64,000 nt of DNA from Hyalangium minutum (GCF_000737315.1 NZ_JMCB01000007.1:321072-385071); one strand, 5' to 3'. Positions 29,095 through 43,111 are shown, counted from the stretch's first letter. The notes: generated by a model from the sequence alone, not told the origin. Made by a program: numbers and translations.

Positions 29095-30036
29095 ATGATC
29101 CAGGTCGAAGGGCTCACGAAGTACTACGGCGAGCATGCAGCGGTTCGAGATCTGGCCTTCACCATCAACAAAGGTGAGGTCATCGGCTTCCTTGGCCTGA
29201 ACGGCGCGGGGAAGACGACGACGTTGAAGATCCTCGGCTGTGTGCTCTTACCCACCTCGGGGCGTGTCGTCATCGACGGATACGACGCGGTGAGAGATCC
29301 CCACGAGGTCCGCAAACGCATCGGGTTCCTGCCCGACACGCCGCCGCTCTATGACGAGATGACGGTGGGCGAGTACCTCGCCTATGTGGCGCAGCTGCGC
29401 GGGGTGTCCTCACAGGAGGTCCGCGCGCGCGTCACCGAGGCCGAGGAGAAGACGGCGCTGCGAGAGAAGGACGGGGCGCTCATCTCCACGCTCAGCCACG
29501 GCTACCGGCAGCGCGTGGGCGTGGCGCAGGCGCTGGTGCACCGCCCGGCCTTCCTCATCCTGGACGAGCCCACCAGTGGCTTGGACCCGGCGCAGATCCG
29601 CGGCATGCGCGAGCTCATCCGCAGCCTCAAGGGTGCGCACACGGTGCTCGTCTCCAGCCACATCCTCCCGGAGATCAGCGAGACGTGTGACCGGCTGCTC
29701 ATCATCAGCGGCGGACAGCTGGTGGCGCAGGGCACGGAGGAGGAGCTGGCGCGCAAGCTGGGCGGCGGCTCGGTGGAGGTGGAGGTGCGTGGCGACAAGG
29801 CCAAGGCCCTGGAGGCGCTGGCGGGCCTGGGGCCCGTCACGGTGGCGCAGGAGGACGGCACGGTGCTGTCGCTGCGTGTGGAGGTGTCTCCGGACCAGAG
29901 GCCCCAGGTGGCGCGGGCACTGGTGGGGGCGGGGCTGGAGCTGCTCCGGCTGGATCGCGGCGCGCAGCGGCTCGAGTCCATCTTCCTGAGCCTGACCCGG
30001 AATGGCGGGGCGTCGTCCCAGGAGGTGTCCTCATGA
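29095..30036 (+). CDS. ABC transporter ATP-binding protein (GldA-like)
   Basis: Walker A GLNGAGKTT; signature LSHGYRQR; Walker B LILDEP. Confidence 0.9.
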   Translation: MIQVEGLTKYYGEHAAVRDLAFTINKGEVIGFLGLNGAGKTTTLKILGCVLLPTSGRVVIDGYDAVRDPHEVRKRIGFLPDTPPLYDEMTVGEYLAYVAQLRGVSSQEVRARVTEAEEKTALREKDGALISTLSHGYRQRVGVAQALVHRPAFLILDEPTSGLDPAQIRGMRELIRSLKGAHTVLVSSHILPEISETCDRLLIISGGQLVAQGTEEELARKLGGGSVEVEVRGDKAKALEALAGLGPVTVAQEDGTVLSLRVEVSPDQRPQVARALVGAGLELLRLDRGAQRLESIFLSLTRNGGASSQEVSS

Positions 30037-33750: not shown

Positions 33751-35469
33751 TCATGTCGGCTGCAGGAAGCGGCCGTCCACGAGGTGGTCAATCACCTCGC
33801 GGGCGGAGTGCGGATCGAGCCTCGCCTTCGTTCCCAGCTGCGTCACCGCCTGGGCGACCGTGGTAGGGCGCTCGAAGGCGGCGAGGGCCGACAGGAGAAT
33901 CTGACCCTCCTCGCCCTGATCCAGTGTCGGGTCGGTGAACCGCCGTGGGCTGACGGAGGGCGCACAGGCGAGGCCCGTTCCGTCCACGGAGCGCACCACC
34001 GTCACCGTCTCCTGCGCCACCTTCGCGGGGACCTTGTGGGGACCCAGCCAGTCACTGAGCTTGAACTGGAGCGTCGAGGGGGCAGTGTTCAGGAGGCGCG
34101 TGCGTCCGTTGATCTGCACCTTCCGCTTTGCAGCCCGGTGCTTCCACGCGAGGGAGTCCACATGGTCCGACGTGCGCTGCACCGCTTCCTCGAGCGCCGC
34201 GTCGCGGAAGCGCAGCATCGGCACGGATACGTCGCCGGGCTCGCGCTGCTCGAAGTACTCGAGGAACTCCGTGAACGTCCGTGCCTCGGTCTCCATGTCG
34301 AACCGCGCGGGGTGCTCCGTGACGAGCGCTCCCGGCTGTGCTTCGAGCCGCTGGTAGCCCACCACGCAGTCCAGGCTGATGACCTTCTCCACCAGGCGGA
34401 GCTCCTCCTTCAGCGTGGCAGCGCTGGCGAAGGGGAGGCCCGCGATGCCGGAGATCTCCACGTCCAGGTTCTTGTGGCGGCGGCAGCGGTCGATGAGCTC
34501 CAGCAGCTCCTGATCCGTGGCACACGGCTTGAGCAGGCCCCGGCGCATCTGCTCGAGCCGCTGTTGCTCCGAGAAGCAGCCGATGTCGAGCACCATGAAG
34601 ACGCGCTCGAAGGTTTGCGCCAGCGCGTCGATGAGCTCGATCCGTGCCACGCCCCACAGGAAGTACGTGCAGCAGTGGCGGGAGAGATCGACTCCCGCCC
34701 AGGTATTCTGGAGGAACTCCGCCGTGCTCCCCGAGAAGTCGTAGCGCATCTGCCACGTCCGAGGAGCGATCTCCTGGTGATCGCGGCGCACGCTCTCCTC
34801 GGATCGCAGGAACGGCTTGGCGCGCCCGAAGGCCGCTTTCTGGTTGCCGCGGGCTCCGCCGCAATAGAGGCAGTTCTCGCCACAGCCCTTGCCGGGCGCG
34901 ACCCACCCCGAGAACGCGTGGAGGTCCTGCTGGCTCAGGAAGATGTCTTGGAAGTGGGAGTAGTAGACGTCCTCGCTGTTCGTGGCGCCCTGGACGTACT
35001 TCAGGGGCAGACGCCGTGGAGAGCCGTCTGGATCCCGGGTGACGCAGTTGGGCGGGGAGGGGTCACCCTGGCAGAGCGCCAGCAGAGGCCGCTCGCCGTC
35101 GCCCAGGACGATGTGGTCGATGGAGTCGAAGGCGTGCAGTTCCCGCCACCAGTACGCCGCGGTGTTACCGCCCACGACGACGCGGATGCTGGGGTCGATC
35201 TTCCGCAAGGTCCGCGCCACGAGCAGGGCGCGGTGGACGTGGTGGAACCACTTGAGGCTGATGCCGACGAGCTTGGGGCGCACACGGGCCACCAGGGCCT
35301 CGAGCGAGCGAGCCACCTCTTCCTCGGTCTCGTCCCCATCGTAGAGCCGGACGAACGCTTCGATGCCGCCCCGGCGCAGGTAGCTCGCGAGATACAGGAT
35401 CCCACACGTGGCCTCGCCGGTACCGGCGCCAAGAAGGAGGACTGGAGAGAGGACGCGACGGCCATTCAT
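33751..35469 (-). CDS. Cobalamin-binding domain radical SAM protein
   Basis: N-terminal GILYLASYL..LVGIS..VVVGG B12-binding-like fold; CxxxCxxC (GCGENCLYC); ATG at 35469. Confidence 0.8.
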   Translation of the reverse strand: MNGRRVLSPVLLLGAGTGEATCGILYLASYLRRGGIEAFVRLYDGDETEEEVARSLEALVARVRPKLVGISLKWFHHVHRALLVARTLRKIDPSIRVVVGGNTAAYWWRELHAFDSIDHIVLGDGERPLLALCQGDPSPPNCVTRDPDGSPRRLPLKYVQGATNSEDVYYSHFQDIFLSQQDLHAFSGWVAPGKGCGENCLYCGGARGNQKAAFGRAKPFLRSEESVRRDHQEIAPRTWQMRYDFSGSTAEFLQNTWAGVDLSRHCCTYFLWGVARIELIDALAQTFERVFMVLDIGCFSEQQRLEQMRRGLLKPCATDQELLELIDRCRRHKNLDVEISGIAGLPFASAATLKEELRLVEKVISLDCVVGYQRLEAQPGALVTEHPARFDMETEARTFTEFLEYFEQREPGDVSVPMLRFRDAALEEAVQRTSDHVDSLAWKHRAAKRKVQINGRTRLLNTAPSTLQFKLSDWLGPHKVPAKVAQETVTVVRSVDGTGLACAPSVSPRRFTDPTLDQGEEGQILLSALAAFERPTTVAQAVTQLGTKARLDPHSAREVIDHLVDGRFLQPT

Positions 35470-35600
35470 GAGGGGGGACCCGACCTTCGTAACAGCGCGA
35501 GTATAGCGGTCTTGTCCCGCGCCGTGGCGACGTGTCATGGGTATGTCAGGGGGAGCCTCTGACAAGTCATCTCCTCGCAGCGAGCGCGGCGTCACTCCGC

Positions 35601-36029
35601 TTCGTCACACGCATCTTCGGAGAGTTCCAGGAGGTGACGCGCGAGGGCGTGCCCATCAGCCGCATCTTCAAGAACGGGGACTTCGGCTACCGCACCATCA
35701 CGGTGGAGCGCCCCGAGCGGGACGCGAAGGGCCAGCCGGTGCTGGGCTCGAAGGGCAAGGGCAAGGGCAAGCCCGTGGCGGACGCGAACCTCCGTGACAC
35801 GGAGAACGTCCCGCTCTCCGAGGACGTGGAGGCGTACTTCCAGCGCGAGGTGCTGCCCCATGCGACGGATGCGTGGATCGACCACGAGAAGACGAAGGTG
35901 GGCTACGCGATTCCCTTCAACCGGCACTTCTACGTCTTCAAGCCGCCGCGCAAGCTGGAGGACATCGACAAGGACTTGAAGGGTGTCACCGGCCGCATTC
36001 TCCAGATGATCGGTGGGCTATCTCAGTGA
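35601..36029 (+). pseudogene. hsdM: 3' fragment of type I R-M methyltransferase
   Basis: [48 protein letters not shown] are typical HsdM C-terminal motifs; N-terminal and catalytic part absent. Confidence 0.85.
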
Positions 36030-36048
36030 GCGTCTCGAAAGGGTGCGC

Positions 36049-36867
36049 TCAGATCCCCATCGTCCAGTCCCAGTAGAGCGGTTGGCACGAGAAGGGGCCC
36101 TGCTCCCAGCTCCGGCTGCAGTGGTAACCCTCGCCACAGGCGTTGGGAGGCCCTTGAGGGTCGCAAGCCGGCAGACAATGCCAGCCGTCGCAGACCTTGC
36201 CCTCGCCGCAGGGGGGCTTGCCTTCGCCGCAGGGTTCGACGCACTCCATCCACACCTTGCCTGGAAAGGCGGCCTCTCGGGCCAACAGTGCATCCCTTTC
36301 GAGGAGGGCGCAGGTGGGGAAACACAGGGGCTGGGGAACGGTGTCCGCGCAGAAAAAGCCCTCCGGGCAGCTCTGACTGTCTTCGGGACGGCAGAGCCGG
36401 GCACACCAAGCGTGTTCTCTGCCACCGCACAGCAAGCCCGCGGCGCAGGCGTTTGCCCGGTCATCCGGAAGCTCGACGCACCCCTCGCCTTCCTGGCGAA
36501 GACCCACGGGGATGCAGCGGCGCACGAAGGGGCCTCCTCCCCATGTAGCGAGGAGGCGGCAGACCTCGTCTTCCTTGCATTGGCCGTCCGTCAAACACTC
36601 GCTGTCGACGCAGGTGGACCGGAGGTGGCGGCCGTCGAACAGGCAGCCCAACGGCGCTTCACACGCTCCGCTAGGTCCGCACCGCCGGCCATAGGTCTCC
36701 CGTTGCATGCGCTGCTCAGGGGTGAGCACGGGGCTGATGCGCACCCCAGGGAGCGGCTGCGTGGGGACTTCTGGCTTCAGGAGCGCCCAGAGCAACAGCA
36801 GCAGGGGCAGGGGCAGCAACACGCTCGCGAAGACCACGCTCCCCTTGCGCCAGTTCCACCTCCGCAC
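36049..36867 (-). CDS. Cys-rich membrane-anchored hypothetical protein
   Basis: N-terminal TM; about 30 Cys in EGF/Dickkopf-like spacing; divergent from the kinase. Confidence 0.7.
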   Translation of the reverse strand: MRRWNWRKGSVVFASVLLPLPLLLLLWALLKPEVPTQPLPGVRISPVLTPEQRMQRETYGRRCGPSGACEAPLGCLFDGRHLRSTCVDSECLTDGQCKEDEVCRLLATWGGGPFVRRCIPVGLRQEGEGCVELPDDRANACAAGLLCGGREHAWCARLCRPEDSQSCPEGFFCADTVPQPLCFPTCALLERDALLAREAAFPGKVWMECVEPCGEGKPPCGEGKVCDGWHCLPACDPQGPPNACGEGYHCSRSWEQGPFSCQPLYWDWTMGI

Positions 36868-37113
36868 CTACGGCCCTCCACATTCGAGACACGCGGGGGA
36901 GCGGTCCTGGCCGTGCCCGCAGACCTCCTTGCGTCGTTTCCGAGGGGCAGCCGGCCGTCACCGTGACGGAGAGGACGGCAACAGCCATCTGGAGCCAACG
37001 CATGGGGTCTCCCATGAAGGGCGCTCGACGCTACCAGCGTGGCTCCCATGGCGTCCACGTTCCGGCAGGTGGAGCAGGTCGCCTGGCCTCACGCGGAAGG
37101 CTTCTAACGCGCG

Positions 37114-37130
37114 CCTACCTCTGAGGTAGG
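37114..37130. promoter_or_regulatory. Perfect palindrome CCTACCT-ctg-AGGTAGG upstream of the kinase
   Basis: 7-bp arms, 13 bp before the kinase ATG, in the divergent intergenic region. Confidence 0.45.
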
Positions 37131-37143
37131 GTGGCGGGCACCC

Positions 37144-38601
37144 ATGCCAAGCCCGTCCATGCCCCCGCTCCACCCCGCAGCGCTCCCTCTCGGCACCCCC
37201 GTGGGCCCTTGGCGCGTGGTGGACTGGGCGGGGCGGGGCGTCAACGGCGCCGTCTACCGCGCCGTGCGCATCGGCCAGGAGCACCTGCCGCCCGTGGCTC
37301 TCAAGGTGGCCGTGCTGCCCGAGGACCCACGCTATGGCCGCGAGCGGGAGCTGCTGTCTCGCACGCTGCACCCGCACATTCCCCGGCTCGTGGACCATGG
37401 ACACTGGGTGAGCCCCAGCGGCGCTCGGCATCCGTTCGTGGCCATGCAGTGGGTGGACGGCGTGCCCCTGTATGAGTGGGGCCGAATGTTCCGTCCCTCG
37501 GCGGCGCAGCAACTGCGGCTGCTGGCCCAGGCGGCGCTCACCCTCCAGTACCTCCATGCACAGGGGGCGCTCCACCGGGACTTCAAGGGCGGCAACCTCT
37601 TGGTCCGCCGCTCCGACAGCCGACTGTTCCTCATGGACTTCGGCTCCGGCATCTACCCGGAGGCGGACACGCTGACGCCTCAGCAACTGCCTCCGGGAAC
37701 GCCGGCGTACCGCTCGCCCGAGGCCTGGCTGTTCACCCTGCGGTTCCGCCACACCTCGGAGCGCTACCGGGCTGGGCCCGCGGATGATGTGTTCGCCCTG
37801 GGCGTCACCGCCTGCGTGCTCGCGACCGGCAAGTACCCGGAGATGGGCGTGCCGCTCAGGGATGAGCAGGGCATCCCGTATTTGGATTCGCTGATGCTGC
37901 CGCGGGCCCTGTTCTCTGCCCAGGTGGCGCCGCCGCTGCGAGAGCTGATTCTGCGCATGCTCGCCATCCGCCCCGAGGAGCGCATCTCCGGGGCCGAGCT
38001 GGCCCCCGCGCTGGAGCAGGCGGCGGACGCGCTCAGCCCGTTCCCCTCGAGGAACCACGAGCCCGTGCCCGAGCCTGAGCCGGTGAGGGCAGAGGCCCTC
38101 GCGGCTCGGCGTTCCGCGCCCGGGCCCGCGTGGTGGCCCTGGCTGGCGGTGGTGGTGGCGGCGGGGGCGCTGGGCCTGTGGGTCGGAGGGATGATGCGGG
38201 AGGCCTTACCCCCGGCTCGCGCAGTGTCTCCGGAGGCCGCGCAAGCCGCGCACTCGCGAGCCGCGCCGGGAGCGCCAGAGACAGAGACGGCAGGGCTCGG
38301 GGAGGCGGCGGGCTCCACTTCGCTGGAGCATGCCTCTCCGTCCGGCTCGGAGCGGGCGGTGGCGGAGAGTCTCCCCGAGCTCTCCGAGGGACAGGCTCAG
38401 CCCGACAAGAAAGGCCGGTGCCCTCACCCCCAGCAAGTGGTGCTCAACGGAGGCTGCTGGGTGCGCATGAAGGTGAGCCGCGAGGCGTGCGACGTCTTCG
38501 GCGATGGCCAGATGTACCAGCAGGCGTGCTACGTGCCGGTGTTTCCCGGCAAGCGTGGCCGCCCGTCCACCTCCGGCGAGGGCCGCCCCCGGCCGCAGTG
38601 A
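37144..38601 (+). CDS. Hanks-type Ser/Thr protein kinase with TM helix and Cys-containing C-terminal domain
   Basis: GRGVNGAVY, VALK, HRDFKGGN, DFG, GTPAYRSPE, DVFALG; TM WWPWLAVVVAAGALGLWV. Confidence 0.9.
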   Translation: MPSPSMPPLHPAALPLGTPVGPWRVVDWAGRGVNGAVYRAVRIGQEHLPPVALKVAVLPEDPRYGRERELLSRTLHPHIPRLVDHGHWVSPSGARHPFVAMQWVDGVPLYEWGRMFRPSAAQQLRLLAQAALTLQYLHAQGALHRDFKGGNLLVRRSDSRLFLMDFGSGIYPEADTLTPQQLPPGTPAYRSPEAWLFTLRFRHTSERYRAGPADDVFALGVTACVLATGKYPEMGVPLRDEQGIPYLDSLMLPRALFSAQVAPPLRELILRMLAIRPEERISGAELAPALEQAADALSPFPSRNHEPVPEPEPVRAEALAARRSAPGPAWWPWLAVVVAAGALGLWVGGMMREALPPARAVSPEAAQAAHSRAAPGAPETETAGLGEAAGSTSLEHASPSGSERAVAESLPELSEGQAQPDKKGRCPHPQQVVLNGGCWVRMKVSREACDVFGDGQMYQQACYVPVFPGKRGRPSTSGEGRPRPQ

Positions 38602-38642
38602 GTGTTGCTGGCTCGAACGAACCGCTGACTGAGAGGAACTCC

Positions 38643-39578
38643 ATGAGGGAGCACATTCCCGTGATTCGTCTGGTGCCAGACCTCGGCGATGACAGCGTGG
38701 TGGCCCGGGACGGCGTGGTTATCTGCTTCTTTCTGCCCCACTCCCACAAGGAGGTGGCTCCGGCCATCTGGCGCGCATTGGAGACCTACCGGCGCGCCGT
38801 ACCTTCTGGATCGTTGGCTTGGTACGTCTCGGATGATGGCGACTATCTCCCGCTGGACGAGAAGGGTTGGGCGCACATCCGCTACAAAATCCTGGAGCGC
38901 CAAGGAGGCTACGCGTGGCACGTGGAGTTGGAGGAGGACTGTAGCCAGGTGGGGGGCTACCACTTCGAGTATGCCGGCCTGTGGCTGAATGATCCGGAAG
39001 GGCTGAACCGGGAGGGCTCGACGACGGGAGTGCTCTTCACCTTGCCCACCGAGTACCTCTTGGAGCACGGCCCCGGCCACGTGCGCGCGCTGGCGCTGGA
39101 ACTGGCACGCGAGCTGCCGTTCAGCTTCGGCTACGCCAGCCTCGCCCTCATTGCTCCTCACGGCCGCTGGTTCGCCGCTCGCAGGGCCGTGGTGCCACTG
39201 CTGTCGCGCTACGCTGGGTTGGACATCTACAGGCTGATAGAGACAGGGGGGCACATCGGGGGGCGCGCCCGAGGCGCGTACTGGCTGACGTTCCTGGGCC
39301 AGCCGTTGCTGGGGCAGGTGGGGGGCGAGGAGGGCTTGAGGAGCAAGCTGGCCTTCCCGCAGGTGTCCGTGCAGCCGCTGGGGGGAGAGCGGGTGCTCAT
39401 CACCCTGGGAGAGTGGCCGGAGCTGATCGACACGGCTCAGGAGGTGTACGTGCTGGAGTACCGGACGCTGGCGTGGGTGTTGGCGCCGTACCTGTACGAG
39501 GAGCGCGATGACTGGTTTTCGTTGTGGGCCCCTGAGGGCGACAACATGCGCCGTTGGATCCGCCGCCTGTGCCAGTGA
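38643..39578 (+). CDS. DUF3396/TsiV-like immunity protein, copy 1
   Basis: 311 aa; paralog of 40471..41406; family recognised from memory of myxobacterial DUF3396 proteins (ELPFSFGYASL, GAYWLTFLG). Confidence 0.7.
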   Translation: MREHIPVIRLVPDLGDDSVVARDGVVICFFLPHSHKEVAPAIWRALETYRRAVPSGSLAWYVSDDGDYLPLDEKGWAHIRYKILERQGGYAWHVELEEDCSQVGGYHFEYAGLWLNDPEGLNREGSTTGVLFTLPTEYLLEHGPGHVRALALELARELPFSFGYASLALIAPHGRWFAARRAVVPLLSRYAGLDIYRLIETGGHIGGRARGAYWLTFLGQPLLGQVGGEEGLRSKLAFPQVSVQPLGGERVLITLGEWPELIDTAQEVYVLEYRTLAWVLAPYLYEERDDWFSLWAPEGDNMRRWIRRLCQ

Positions 39579-39643
39579 GCACCTGATGGCGGGGCGCTGC
39601 CCAGCGATCTCCGAGTGCCCCTGCGGTAGCATGGCCGCGTGCC

Positions 39644-40474
39644 ATGAGTGAACCGAACCGCTCTTTGTTCGCACGTGTCGAGCGCGCGTGCCTGTGGGGT
39701 GCCAGTGTGCTGCTGGTGGCGTGCGCTGGAAGCACGCCCCATTCCCGCCAGGGGCAGTGGCGCCTGGACACGGAGACGGCCGGGCGGCTTCGCCATGCCA
39801 CGACTGTGGCGGGGGAGGGGGCCAGCACCGCCGCGCCTGCCGCAGCCCCCACGGTGGCCTCGGTGCTGGTGAAGACTGCGCCCCTGCTGGTGACCGTGCT
39901 GGGAAGTGACAACGCGGTGGGAGAGCTTGAGGAGCGGCTCTGGGAATGCGCGAGAGAGGCCGAGCGCCGTATCAACGCGCGGTATTTCGGAGGCCGAGCG
40001 CCCACACGCGCGGAGTGCGGGGAGGAAGTCGTGGTGGATGGGTGTCCCCAGCCCATCACCCGGGCGATGCAACTGGGCCAGCAGAAGCATGCGCTGGCGC
40101 TGGAGTGTGCTCGCGAGGTGCTGGAGGAATTGTGGCCCCGGCCGTTCAGGCTGGAGCAGCGCTACCGCTACTATCGCAACGCCCAGTTTCTGGAGATGGT
40201 GAGCCGCGAGGAGGAGGCGCGCTTGATTGCCCAGGGGTGCACCCGCGAGCTGTGGCGCACCATCAAGCCCGACATCGTTCTGTATCTCGACGATAACTGG
40301 CGCCGCGCTGCACTCACCCTGGACTTCAAGTTTCCGTGCCCAGAGACCAATGTCCCCCAATGGCGGCAATACAGCAGCGACAGCGCCTATTCCGGGCAGA
40401 GCCAAGGCCAAATCTACCAAGAGGCATTGGGAGGACATCCGGTCATTCTTTCGCCCAAGAAGATTACTCCATGA
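39644..40474 (+). CDS. Lipoprotein with C-terminal PD-(D/E)xK-like nuclease domain (putative polymorphic toxin)
   Basis: Lipobox LLVAC; KPDIV...LDFKFPC...QGQIY; ATGA-coupled to the downstream immunity gene. Confidence 0.65.
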   Translation: MSEPNRSLFARVERACLWGASVLLVACAGSTPHSRQGQWRLDTETAGRLRHATTVAGEGASTAAPAAAPTVASVLVKTAPLLVTVLGSDNAVGELEERLWECAREAERRINARYFGGRAPTRAECGEEVVVDGCPQPITRAMQLGQQKHALALECAREVLEELWPRPFRLEQRYRYYRNAQFLEMVSREEEARLIAQGCTRELWRTIKPDIVLYLDDNWRRAALTLDFKFPCPETNVPQWRQYSSDSAYSGQSQGQIYQEALGGHPVILSPKKITP

Positions 40475-41406
40475 AGAAACACATCCCCCGGATTCGGCTG
40501 CTCCCTGAGCTCGGCGATGACGCTGTGGTGGCACGGGACGGTGTGGCTATCTGCTTCTTCCTGCCCCACTCTCACAAGGAGGTGGCCCACGCCATCTGGC
40601 GGGCCCTTGAGACCTACCGGCGCTCCATTCCTCCTGAGGCGCTGCCTTGGTACGTCTCGAATGATGGCGACTATCTCCCGCTGGATGAGAAGGGCTGGGA
40701 GCAAACCCGCTACACCCTCTTAGAGCGCCCGTGGGGCTCTGCCTGGATCGTCCAACTGGAAGAGGACTGCAGCCAGGTAGGGGGCTACAACTTCGAGTAC
40801 GTCGGCCGGTGGCTGAACGATCCGGAAGGGTTGAACCGGCAGGGCTCGGCGACGGGGGTGCTCTTCACCTTGCCCACCGAGTACATGGTGGAGCACGGCC
40901 CCGGCCATGTGCGCGCGCTGGCGCTGGAGTTGGCGCGCGAGCTGCCCTTCAGCTTCGGCTACGCGAGCCTGGCCCTCATCGCGCCTCAGGGCCGCTGGTT
41001 CGCCGCGCGGGGCGCCGTCGAGCCTCTGCTTTGGCGCTACCTGGGGCTGGACGTCTACAAGCTGATGGAGACAGGGGCCTGTATCGGTTCGCAGGCCCGA
41101 GGTGCGTACTGGCTGACATTCTTGGGCCAGCCGCTGCTGGGGCAGGTGGGGGGCGAGGAGGGCTTGAGAAGCAAGCTGGCTTTCCCTCAGGTGTCGGTGC
41201 AGCCGCTGGAAGGCGAGCGGGTGCTGCTTACCCTGGGAGAGTGGCCGAAACTGCTCGACACGCAGAAGGGCGAGACGGGACCGGAGTACAGGGCGCTGGC
41301 GCGCGTGTTGGAGCCGTATCTGTATGAGGAGCGGTATGACTGGTTCCCCAGGTTGCCCCCAGCAGAGAACTCCTTGCGCCGCTGGATCCGGCGCTTGTGC
41401 CAGTGA
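40471..41406 (+). CDS. DUF3396/TsiV-like immunity protein, copy 2 (cognate)
   Basis: 311 aa; start overlaps the toxin stop; long blocks identical to copy 1. Confidence 0.72.
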   Translation: MKKHIPRIRLLPELGDDAVVARDGVAICFFLPHSHKEVAHAIWRALETYRRSIPPEALPWYVSNDGDYLPLDEKGWEQTRYTLLERPWGSAWIVQLEEDCSQVGGYNFEYVGRWLNDPEGLNRQGSATGVLFTLPTEYMVEHGPGHVRALALELARELPFSFGYASLALIAPQGRWFAARGAVEPLLWRYLGLDVYKLMETGACIGSQARGAYWLTFLGQPLLGQVGGEEGLRSKLAFPQVSVQPLEGERVLLTLGEWPKLLDTQKGETGPEYRALARVLEPYLYEERYDWFPRLPPAENSLRRWIRRLCQ

Positions 41407-41478
41407 GTCCCGGAGAGCAGGGAGCACCCGAGATTGACGGGCGCGTGCTTGCGCCCCTGCGGGGGCATGCCGCAGGCC

Positions 41479-41550
41479 ATGCGTGAACCGAACCTGTCTG
41501 CTCCTTCCAGCCATCGCGAACCTGCCCGTGCTCGGAGGGGCTCGCGATGA
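41479..41550 (+). pseudogene. Truncated start of a second toxin-like gene (MREPN...)
   Basis: Upstream sequence and first codons (ccatgcgtgaaccgaacc) match the toxin start (ccatgagtgaaccgaacc); stops after 23 codons at the hsdS ATG. Confidence 0.55.
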
Positions 41551-41624
41551 GCTTCCCTCGCTACCCGAAGTACAAGGACAGGGGTGTCCCGTGGCTGGGC
41601 GAGGTGCCTGCTCACTGGGAAGTG
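41547..41624 (+). pseudogene. hsdS: 5' stub of type I R-M specificity subunit
   Basis: MSFPRYPKYKDRGVPWLGEVPAHWEV is the characteristic HsdS N-terminus; stop at 41640-41642; not in the ORF track. Confidence 0.8.
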
Positions 41625-41866
41625 TGGAGTCGCCCACGCTGACGCAGCAGGCCGCGAACAACACCAAGGAACAGTTCGCGAACTCGCCGGATCTCCAGAG
41701 CGAATTGGAGAATGCCATCATCGCGGCGTACGACGCCCACACGCTCATGAGCACGCAGGCACTGGACTCGAAGGCGGTTCAGCAAGCGCTCAAGGACATC
41801 CTGCTGAACCATGCGCTGCTGTGGGAGGCGCTCCGCGCCAAGGCCACAGAGAGCCCGGCCCGGTAG
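41622..41866 (+). pseudogene. hsdR: 3' fragment of type I R-M restriction subunit
   Basis: QQAANNTKEQFANSPDL..AIIAAYDAH..MSTQALDS..LKDILL..LWEALR resembles an HsdR C-terminus; joined out of frame to the hsdS stub. Confidence 0.72.
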
Positions 41867-41981
41867 GGGCCCCGCTTCTCAGCTGGGCGGGTGGGTCGGA
41901 GTCGCCTGCGCCAGGACTCCTTGTGGCCAAGTGCCCGTTTTTACAGGGGCTGTTTCAGCTGTGGCCATCCGCCCGTCGCAG

Positions 41982-42001
41982 ACAGCTGACCAGTCAGCTG
42001 T
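41982..42001. repeat. Perfect 20-bp palindrome ACAGCTGAC-CA-GTCAGCTGT
   Basis: 9-bp arms, between the hsdR remnant and the convergent gvpF/L gene. Confidence 0.8.
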
Positions 42002-42059
42002 GGCACGCCGCATTCTGATCAACCCAGTGGTTGGTACCGTGAACGTGGGGCCGTTCCTG

Positions 42060-42713
42060 TCACCGCTCCGGTGTGGGCTCCCGCCGCAGCACGATGTCCG
42101 TGAAGTGATAGGGCGCCCACGGGCCTGTGTACTGGAGCGTGAGCAACTCGAAGCGCGCCGCCAGCGAGCGCAGCTTCGCATCGAAGGCCGCCTCGTGCTC
42201 CCGTGCCACCAGGAAGGCCGCGTTCAGGATCATCCGCTCGCCCAGGGGGCGCACCTCGCGCACCGCGGTGGCCAGCGGCCTCAGGGACTCCAGCAGCGTC
42301 TGGGCGTCATGCCTCGCCGCTTCCCGGGCAATGACGTCCTCATCCCACAGCACCTTCACGCCCAGCTCGATGTGCCCTTCCAGCTTCGCCAGCACGCCCG
42401 TGAAGGCGTCCCGCGCCGAGCGCAGCAGCTCCACCACCTCCTCGTGGCCTCGGAACGTGAGCCCGAAGGCCGCTGGCAGCAGCGTGTGCTCGCGCATCAC
42501 CGCCTCCTGCACGCGGTGGTGGGCCAGCAGGTGGTCCCTCGTGGGGTCCGGCACTGCCGCTGAGCCCTCGGACACCACCGCCGCCAGCTCGCCGTCGTGC
42601 ACCGTCACCACCTCGGCGGGCGGTGTCCCCAGGCCGAGCGCGCCGAAGCGCAGCTCCTGCTTCGCGCGCAGCACCCCATACAGGTACAGGGAGGAGGTCC
42701 GGGCCATGGCCAT
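42060..42713 (-). CDS. GvpL/GvpF family gas vesicle protein
   Basis: LYLYGV, LAAVVS, LLAHHRVQE, TLLPAAFG, MILNAAFLV, YTGPWAPYHF. Confidence 0.85.
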   Translation of the reverse strand: MAMARTSSLYLYGVLRAKQELRFGALGLGTPPAEVVTVHDGELAAVVSEGSAAVPDPTRDHLLAHHRVQEAVMREHTLLPAAFGLTFRGHEEVVELLRSARDAFTGVLAKLEGHIELGVKVLWDEDVIAREAARHDAQTLLESLRPLATAVREVRPLGERMILNAAFLVAREHEAAFDAKLRSLAARFELLTLQYTGPWAPYHFTDIVLRREPTPER

Positions 42714-42716
42714 CTG

Positions 42717-43111
42717 TCACTTCTTGCGTGCCGCGAGCACCTTCTTCACCTCCGCCACCAGCGTGTCCGGTAGACAGGGTTTCACCACGAAGGAGTCGCA
42801 CTGCACCTGCTGCCCGGAGCCGGGCTCATTGGCCAACGCGTGCCCCGTCAGTGCCACCACCGGAATGTGCTTCGTGCGCTCGTCGCTCTTGAGCCGGCGC
42901 GTGGCCTCCCACCCGTCGATAATGGGCAGGGACAGGTCCATCAGGATGACGTCCGGTATCAGCGCGAAGGCCTTGTCCAGCGCCTCGGCCCCGTTCGTCG
43001 CCTGGTCCACCCGGAACCCGGAGAACTCCAGGTACTCCGCGTACATCTCCCGCGCGTCCTGGTAGTCGTCGACGACCAGCACGAGGGGCTTGGAGTTGTC
43101 CGGAGCATTCG

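Follow-up and report, generated by a model that had tools for sequence, protein, structure and literature searches.

The stretch of DNA considered here, hereafter the window, spans 64,000 nucleotides (nt) of Hyalangium minutum, which we take to be strain DSM 14724 (contig JMCB01000007.1, assembly GCA_000737315.1). The window sequence is that of contig JMCB01000007.1, window position 29644 corresponding to contig position 350715, and coordinates are those of the window unless another locus is named. Between 35605 and 41866 it carries three gene fragments in the operon order M, S, R which, by sequence comparison, are the relic of a type I restriction-modification (R-M) operon, hsdM-hsdS-hsdR. 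The first two are separated by a 5.5-kb block encoding a kinase and a predicted toxin-immunity module, which lies exactly where the hsdM stop would overlap the hsdS start and is flanked by a 5-bp target duplication. The operon remnants and the two copies of the duplicated sequence are distributed as follows.

35605 to 36029, plus strand: 3' fragment of hsdM, with the last ~141 codons and the TGA stop; the catalytic N6_Mtase part is gone.
36027 to 36031, plus strand: left copy of TGAGC, formed by the hsdM stop TGA (36027-36029) and 2 nt of hsdS codon 2.
41547 to 41618, plus strand: hsdS stub, codons 1-24, fused out of frame to hsdR, with the stop of the open reading frame (ORF) at 41643.
41548 to 41552, plus strand: right copy of TGAGC, within hsdS codons 1-2 (ATGAGC), the hsdS ATG being at 41547.
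41619 to 41866, plus strand: 3' fragment of hsdR, with the last ~80 codons and the stop.

Searches of Pfam, NCBIfam and the PDB with the three hsd fragments alone returned no matches, and their identity rests on a search of a large protein collection, on comparison with intact operons and on the PADLOC model MTase_I. At the amino acid level, they are 73-95% identical to their counterparts in two other operons, L066 and L067, and in L081, a contig from a close relative. The HsdM fragment has 2805 relatives in the protein collection, the best being 87-88% identical and named type I M protein or PF02384, and the C-termini of these relatives all read M(I/L)GGLS(Q/K/A), as in the window. Because its match to MTase_I is confined to the end of the model (positions 563-658 of 661, E 5.8e-41), the fragment represents a C-terminal tail devoid of the catalytic domain; no Pfam match to N6_Mtase, the mark of a functional HsdM, was obtained with the hsdM remnant. 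The hsdS stub, read as a 31-codon ORF from 41547, is identical at 21 of 26 positions to residues 1-26 of an intact 456-residue HsdS, and the alignment is limited to these residues, short of the two target-recognition domains of a functional HsdS. As for HsdR, 58 of 80 residues are identical to residues 962-1041 of an intact 1043-residue protein, and with the intact 1040-residue HsdR of L081 the fragment shares 95% identity at the C-terminus; what remains are ~80 C-terminal residues, without the HSDR_N nuclease and superfamily 2 helicase domains that a functional HsdR contains. These matches to HsdM, HsdS and HsdR bear out the type I R-M relic that had been proposed in an initial annotation of this DNA.

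In intact relatives, hsdM and hsdS are contiguous with a 4-bp overlap (L066, tctcaATGAGCttcccgcg; L067, tcacaATGAGTttcccgcg; L080, tcgcaATGAGCttcccacg; in longer reads of the same junctions, gggctttctcaATGAGCttcccgcg, ggctgtcacaATGAGTttcccgcg and gagctctcgcaATGAGCttcccacg, respectively). L066 has 4-bp overlaps at both the M/S and the S/R boundary, and the HsdM tail of L080 falls in the same 90% cluster as that of the window. In the window, the left junction reads ...ggtgggctatctcagTGAGCgtctcg and the right junction ...ggggctcgcgATGAGCttccctcgc, the two TGAGC copies being spaced by 5521 bp and the insert itself (36032-41547) comprising 5516 bases. Joining the window at TGAGC yields tctcaGTGAGCttccctcg, which departs from the junction shared by the intact relatives, caATGAGCttccc, at one base, the left copy having G for A, a synonymous change from CAA to CAG. 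The initial annotation had placed the hsdM end and the hsdS stub at TGAGC copies starting at 36027 and 41548, and had claimed that removal of 5521 bp restores the coupling of both genes; the coordinates and the sequence are correct, and the restored coupling matches that of L066, L067 and L080 but for the synonymous change. The duplication measures 5 bp, or 6 bp if one mismatch is allowed. When a random 5.5-kb insert was placed at a random site in a simulation based on the composition of the genome, an apparent duplication of at least 5 bp arose in 0.9% of trials, and the TGAGC duplication is thus unlikely to be a product of chance. A longer duplication suggested by eye (TCGGnGGGGCT upstream, TGAGCnTCnCG downstream) was compared with random genome windows and discarded, as all P values exceeded 0.1.

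The block between the two copies of TGAGC is composed of the following parts.

36032 to 36048, no strand assigned: left-end spacer, 17 nt that separate the left TGAGC from the Cys-rich gene's stop, matched nowhere else.
36049 to 36867, minus strand: gene for a myxobacterial Cys-rich repeat protein of 272 amino acids with an intact C-terminus; absent from the NCBI annotation.
37144 to 38601, plus strand: Ser/Thr protein kinase gene, 485 amino acids, with a Cys-containing C-terminal tail (Pfam Pkinase, E 4.6e-21).
38643 to 39578, plus strand: TsiV1, of the DUF3396 immunity family (PF11876, E 3.1e-54; PADLOC PDC-M20B, E 1.4e-120).
39644 to 40474, plus strand: toxin gene, encoding a predicted outer-membrane lipoprotein of 276 amino acids (PADLOC PDC-M20A, E 5.8e-100).
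40466 to 41495, plus strand: truncated second copy of a tandem unit with a period of 1828 bp, the first copy of which starts at 38638, as defined by repeat comparison.
40471 to 41406, plus strand: TsiV2, also DUF3396 (PF11876, E 1e-55), in the cognate position and with a 4-bp overlap with the toxin stop.
41496 to 41547, plus strand: right-end segment of 52 nt, in which a Shine-Dalgarno sequence, GGAGG, precedes the hsdS ATG by 8 nt.

Four of the five insert genes lie on the hsd strand, the kinase gene being divergent from the Cys-rich gene, and in G+C content (0.60-0.75) the insert resembles the genome around it; the block is native myxobacterial DNA. TsiV1 has no toxin gene upstream and represents an orphan or spare immunity gene. 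Compared with five relatives, the Cys-rich protein has lost 33 internal residues, six conserved Cys among them, so that its gene may be a pseudogene, and its paralogues in other genomes are usually paired with Ser/Thr kinases. An Rfam search of 35000-42800 gave no match, no promoter-like site was found, and terminator-like sites occurred at chance level. The description of the block as a toxin/kinase cassette agrees with the kinase and the predicted toxin-immunity module that it encodes, and likewise the claim that it lacks a recombinase or transposase stands: five ORFs fill the insert and none of them is such an enzyme according to Pfam and NCBIfam, and none is called in the annotation within 10 kb on either side.

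The block does not have the ends of a clean cassette. After the repeated intergenic spacer, only the first 17 nt of a further toxin gene remain (ATGCGTGAACCGAACCT, 41479-41495), where the tandem unit breaks off, and the 52-nt segment follows. These features are of relevance to the possibility that the block is, or once was, a transposable element of the non-autonomous kind, moved by a transposase that acts in trans and duplicates 5 bp of target (Tn3, Tn7, Mu or IS-like), and that its ends are now eroded. An exact direct duplication that chance rarely produces is what such an element would leave, and the kinase is found together with tox-TsiV at unrelated loci, as if both formed a mobile unit. 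On the other hand, neither a repeat search nor inspection by eye revealed terminal inverted repeats (the ends share only TCnCGA), the insert finishes on the right with a broken toxin gene followed by 52 unrelated nt rather than with the terminus of an element, no transposase is encoded in or around the insert, and the order of the genes varies from locus to locus (tox-TsiV-kinase versus kinase-TsiV-tox-TsiV). Moreover, the terminal 17 and 52 nt recur neither at other copies of the module nor anywhere else in the window or in 80 fetched loci, orthologous junctions aside. We consider this origin unlikely. With neither inverted repeats nor recurring ends, nothing indicates a site-specific core or a dedicated recombinase acting in trans, as invoked in the initial annotation, which had also suggested a search for further cassette copies with similar junctions.

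The relative age of the insertion can be read from the relatives of the locus, for which L081, L070, L082, L079, L076 and 65 radical-SAM loci (L001-L065, one genome per species) were compared. The short-read contig L081, from SRR33780596, matches the window at 96.8% of nucleotides over the stretch that runs from gvpF/L into the histidine kinase gene; its GvpF/L is 99% identical at the amino acid level, and GvpF/L, response regulator and histidine kinase together range from 96 to 99%. The contig starts inside the toxin stub and continues with the same 52 nt and gcgATGAGCttccctcgc into an intact 454-codon hsdS, a 1040-codon hsdR and gvpF/L; hsdM is not seen in it. Because complete hsdS and hsdR genes stand behind the junction in L081, the cassette junction is older than the decay of the operon, and the insertion is compatible with intact downstream hsd genes. 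The notion that a defence slot was converted into a weapon locus was therefore overstated, the relic in the window being the product of two later deletions. The right junction is also kept, stub and 52 nt included, in L070, an error-rich long-read contig that contains it twice together with at least four TsiV-toxin units, one junction copy being followed by near-full-length hsdS, hsdR and gvpF/L. The 52-nt segment is 94-96% conserved at the same junction in L081 and in both arms of L070. As L070 consists of two arms of high similarity and is rich in frameshifts, it was taken as evidence for the right junction only.

Regarding the architecture of this contig, positions 1-13350 of L070 consist of two inverted (TsiV-toxin)n arrays whose arms are 94.5% alike, each ending in a stub|hsdS junction, and the two hsdS genes are wholly different after codon ~25, that is, they have different target-recognition domains. 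Either the palindrome is genuine and holds a shufflon-like pair of inverted hsdS genes, or it arose as a fold-back artefact of long-read sequencing.

The two junctions of L070, with their different hsdS target-recognition sequences, imply that more than one hsdS copy is possible at such a locus, and they would fit an explanation in which nothing was inserted: two copies of the R-M operon would have flanked a resident toxin locus, one being later stripped of all that follows hsdM and the other of all that precedes hsdS. Alternatively, the window, which comes from a draft assembly, might be an assembly chimera. In the first case, two independent deletions would have to end within 0-2 bp of the same 4-bp overlap, and the toxin locus was not resident here, as two relatives, L079 and L076, have neither toxin locus nor R-M operon. 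In addition, the right junction is reproduced in three independent assemblies and the locus is internal to a 385-kb contig. We regard this explanation as extremely improbable.

L079 is a metagenome contig of 1.2 kb, 89-93% identical in nucleotides, which joins the upstream region with the radical-SAM gene (up to window position 35604) to the 3' end of gvpF/L (from window position 42043), with 652 bp between them and neither R-M genes nor cassette. Within this interval, L079 encodes on its minus strand (positions 219-722) a predicted lipoprotein of 167 amino acids (MNKQVPAVTLHVCLLIAAVAAGCGG...) with no counterpart in the window. In the more distant L076, 9 kb of unrelated genes, without a radical-SAM gene, lie between the conserved genes h362 and gvpF/L. 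The radical-SAM/B12 gene of the window (33751-35469) has orthologues with 61-89% identity in 65 myxobacterial species, and in 65 of 65 neither of the window's flanking genes is found beside the orthologue, which leaves the flank alignment suggested in the initial annotation without a basis at the level of other species. Because the neighbours differ in this manner across relatives, the interval between the radical-SAM gene and gvpF/L behaves as a hotspot of gene turnover, or plasticity, with no integrase, and there is no tRNA gene in the window.

In L082, a kinase-TsiV-toxin remnant-TsiV array adjoins a 1040-codon hsdR, and both hsdS and the toxin stub are gone; L082 is an independent decay path of the same composite locus. 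Its toxin gene is internally deleted to a remnant of 63 codons and the stop of its second TsiV gene lies 18 bp from the hsdR start (L082, 1992-3140).

The account that we favour, and consider probable, is that an intact R-M operon gained the embedded block of native DNA at the hsdM/hsdS overlap and decayed afterwards. A horizontally acquired type I operon, while still intact, would have received the block exactly at the 4-bp overlap of the hsdM stop with the hsdS start, through a single illegitimate event in which 5 bp of target became duplicated. Two routes can be envisaged. In the first, a staggered break would be filled in around a captured DNA fragment. In the second, a circle or fragment excised from a toxin array would integrate at TGAGC microhomology; the odd right end would then be explained, because the circle would have closed at the boundary between the stub and the 52 nt. 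The position at a gene boundary would reflect selection, since only there is the hsdM stop kept while hsdS is given a start and a Shine-Dalgarno sequence, so that methylation and restriction would stay balanced; selection seems to be the best explanation of this position. Within this account, illegitimate recombination is roughly twice as likely as transposition mobilised in trans, and a dedicated mobile element is the less likely source of the insertion. It would be of general interest if a recombinase acting in trans slotted promoter-less cargo with its own Shine-Dalgarno sequence between coupled defence genes, leaving the 5-bp duplication as its footprint, and such slotting at ATGA overlaps would explain the origin of embedded systems; we judge this highly unlikely.

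Several observations weigh against the account of insertion and later decay. The left junction, between hsdM and the Cys-rich gene, is seen in this one draft assembly only, and its copy of the duplication reads GTGAGC versus ATGAGC in the relatives, so that one extra substitution must be assumed. Several transposon families likewise leave target duplications of 5 bp as their mark. No contiguous hsdM-hsdS pair was found in the same chromosomal context among the relatives, and it is from unrelated contiguous operons that the order of events, first R-M and then cassette, is deduced. The initial annotation had proposed to look for an empty site in which hsdM and hsdS are contiguous, but the sole empty allele found, L079, is also devoid of the R-M operon. 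The simplest allele has neither operon nor cassette, and wherever the operon occurs at this site, the cassette is already inside it. Finally, the assignment of the toxin as a nuclease, dealt with below, is indirect (no Pfam match, Foldseek E of at least 0.17).

The subsequent decay of the operon can be followed at the nucleotide level. One deletion removed ~4.2 kb from hsdS codon 25 to hsdR codon ~961, and the fusion lies within an imperfect 15-nt similarity between hsdS and hsdR (TGC..A.TGGGAAG), the BLAST alignments of both genes overlapping by 10 nt at 41609-41618. From its sequence, the loss of hsdS and hsdR has the character of a microhomology-type deletion. Another deletion cut hsdM at 35605: homology to L066 and L067 begins at ~35605, flush with the point where homology to the R-M-free L079 stops (35604). 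A single deletion from upstream of the gene for the 167-residue lipoprotein into hsdM would account for the loss of hsdM. The cassette would have outlived the R-M genes because the loss of immunity is costly. The remaining HsdM tail reads KNGDF, HATDAW and GYAIPF versus the otherwise invariant KNEDF, HAPDAW and GYEIPF (E to G, P to T and E to A), and such substitutions at invariant sites are the pattern expected of a fragment free of selection.

Some side observations concern the wider HsdM family. A protein from a 901-bp contig, P0363, has the same 15-residue C-terminal end as the HsdM of the window. Many relatives of the latter (P0001-P0120) are pieces of 160, 197 or 248 amino acids that begin at an internal Met, some of them on contigs longer than 100 kb (P0054, P0066, P0110), and even L066, the closest intact-looking operon, has an in-frame TAG at positions 60-62, in the hsdM motif NPPFGV*WKK. 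These cases suggest either widespread pseudogenisation or a systematic effect of gene calling in a very conserved, cross-phylum R-M family.

With respect to the cargo, the toxin belongs to a family of 386 relatives of ~273 amino acids, all of them myxobacterial where the source names the organism and none of them in viral contigs, and at every locus looked at a TsiV gene comes after the toxin gene. Thirty aligned relatives display a conserved lipobox LLxAC (LLVAC in the window, with Cys27), a variable linker of ~45 residues and a conserved domain in which H149, D210 (KPD) and K229 are invariant and D227 is nearly so (LDFKFPCP). On consecutive predicted strands, D210 and D227-x-K229 make up a D...(D/E)xK pattern, which corresponds to a PD-(D/E)xK-type motif. 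The toxin has no Pfam match even at E of 10 or less, and a profile search of PDB sequences retrieved nothing relevant. Its AlphaFold2 model reaches a predicted local distance difference test (pLDDT) score of 85-97 for residues 70-276, and in a weak Foldseek comparison with the PDB (best E 0.17), three of the six top matches are PD-(D/E)xK nucleases (PfoI, Cas4 and NucC). Because the +2 residue after the lipobox Cys is not Lys, sorting to the outer membrane is predicted (rule as in PMC5562445).

PF11876 (DUF3396) is described as 'type VI immunity for VRR-NUC', and DUF3396 proteins are specific immunity proteins for VRR-Nuc, that is PD-(D/E)xK, effectors of type VI secretion systems (T6SS), often encoded by two gene copies beside a single effector (Hespanhol et al., eLife 2022, PMC9635880). 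TsiV2 gives a weak match (E 0.016) to the PA0821 immunity structure 7DRG. Taken together, the toxin is likely a nuclease of the PD-(D/E)xK type that reaches the outer membrane as an exported lipoprotein and is counteracted in kin by cytoplasmic TsiV, and because of this combination the module would serve inter-bacterial competition (kin discrimination) rather than phage defence. The kinase may travel with the module as a third component. At the unrelated locus L071 (11834-12508), a kinase 79% identical to that of the window over 169 amino acids lies directly after tox-TsiV, and in H. rubrum (L072, 11806-12888), a kinase of 43% identity with the same Cys-containing tail occupies the same position.

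Embedding of foreign genes in operons of this type is already on record. Payne et al. (bioRxiv 10.1101/2024.01.29.577857) described cassettes embedded in type I R-M, BREX, DISARM and Hma operons, related to a 'genomic sink' and linked horizontal transfer, and proposed the so-called PDC systems, genes lying within BREX, DISARM or type I R-M systems that are not pseudogenised, as phage-defence candidates. In their Supplementary file 8, the cassette CAS_00092, made up of two families, stands beside the number 167 with the entry 'Assign as candidate PDC-M20'. The toxin and TsiV of the window match the PDC-M20A and PDC-M20B models over their full length, so that for this pair, too, embedding is on record in one or more of the three system types BREX, DISARM and type I R-M. 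The resemblance extends to the arrangement, a two-gene module with A preceding B between hsd genes, on the same strand and free of mobility genes, and both the 'genomic sink' idea and linked horizontal transfer fit this locus. On the other hand, the host operon is here a relic, while the published screen was restricted to non-pseudogenised systems, and the block is larger, with the Cys-rich gene, the kinase, a duplicated immunity gene and the toxin stub. The 5-bp target duplication is a detail outside 10.1101/2024.01.29.577857, and the sequence features favour inter-bacterial toxin-immunity over phage defence. The locus is thus a new example of a known phenomenon, with a mechanistic footprint, and not a new class of element.

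The PDC-M20 label raises the possibility that the tox/TsiV pair is a genuine anti-phage system, embedded because it cooperates with the R-M system or serves as its backup, like PrrC in EcoprrI. The strong matches to both models, the definition of PDC-M20 from instances in non-pseudogenised hosts, the placement of most insert genes on the hsd strand, and the Shine-Dalgarno sequence that the insert supplies to hsdS, with hsdS and hsdR intact in L081, are all compatible with such a role. It is opposed by the conserved type II signal peptide and lipobox of the A component, which is therefore predicted to leave the cytoplasm, by the membership of the B component in a family that confers immunity against T6SS nuclease effectors (PMC9635880), and by units amplified in tandem, spare immunity genes included, in the manner of polymorphic toxin loci. 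Moreover, the two copies checked outside the lineage, L071 and L072, are not in defence loci, and the PDC systems are putative candidates. PrrC itself (hsdM-hsdS-prrC-hsdR) is comparable in being a toxic nuclease gene nested in a type I R-M operon with no mobility gene of its own. It differs in that PrrC is cytoplasmic, regulated by the R-M complex and anti-phage, whereas the toxin of the window is predicted to be exported and has a separate immunity protein; furthermore, prrC is found at the S/R boundary and the toxin at the M/S boundary. An anti-phage function seems to us quite unlikely.

Two families of inter-bacterial toxins offer further parallels. With TseV/TsiV (PMC9635880), the module shares the DUF3396/TsiV immunity, the D...DxK motif of the toxin and, as in TseV1/TseV2, duplicated immunity genes beside one toxin. 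Unlike TseV, the toxin of the window lacks PAAR and other T6SS-linked domains as well as a Pfam match to VRR_NUC, and carries a lipoprotein signal peptide instead; no T6SS genes adjoin the module. With the SitA/SitI toxins (Vassallo et al., eLife 2017, PMC5562445; mBio 2021, PMC8546572), it has in common a myxobacterial lipobox lipoprotein with predicted outer-membrane sorting, a C-terminal nuclease-like domain, an immunity gene without signal peptide immediately downstream, many alleles per genome and a location in variable regions. The six SitA families are defined by an escort domain of ~375 amino acids (PMC8546572), whereas the toxin family measures ~273 amino acids, with ~45 disordered residues between lipobox and folded domain. 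Because it is too short for the escort domain, the toxin was not filed as SitA and, as far as can be judged from length alone, falls outside the six described families; nevertheless, it probably works like the SitA/SitI toxins, which are delivered by outer-membrane exchange. The chances appear about even that PDC-M20 represents an unrecognised family of myxobacterial lipoprotein nuclease toxins without escort domain, mis-filed as a phage-defence candidate.

These considerations bear on the way in which defence systems are found, as new phage-defence systems are now nominated on the ground that they are embedded in operons such as R-M and BREX, and the route by which cassettes enter defence operons has not been described so far. 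The locus provides a base-resolved example, with entry at a 4-bp stop/start overlap, a 5-bp duplication, a ribosome-binding site supplied by the insert and no mobility gene. It also forms part of a natural series, from L079 without operon through L081 with intact hsdS and hsdR and L082, which has lost hsdS, to the relic of the window, and this decay series shows embedded cargo outliving its host system. In addition, it calls for caution with 'guilt by embedding', as PDC-M20 resembles an exported lipoprotein nuclease with T6SS-type immunity, which points to an inter-bacterial weapon. Given the signal peptide and lipobox, the immunity partner, the tandem amplification with spare immunity genes and the location of L071 and L072, the defence label is open to doubt, and on these sequence features its re-annotation is likely to be warranted.

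A minor feature of the window lies at 41870-42042, between the hsdR stop and gvpF/L, where ~173 bp of lower G+C are present that L081, L070 and L079 lack at this place. The segment is single in the window and without an Rfam match, it is flanked by an imperfect direct repeat (GGGGCCCCGCTTCTCA / GGGGCCGTTCCTGTCA), and it may be a small insertion with a target duplication of its own.

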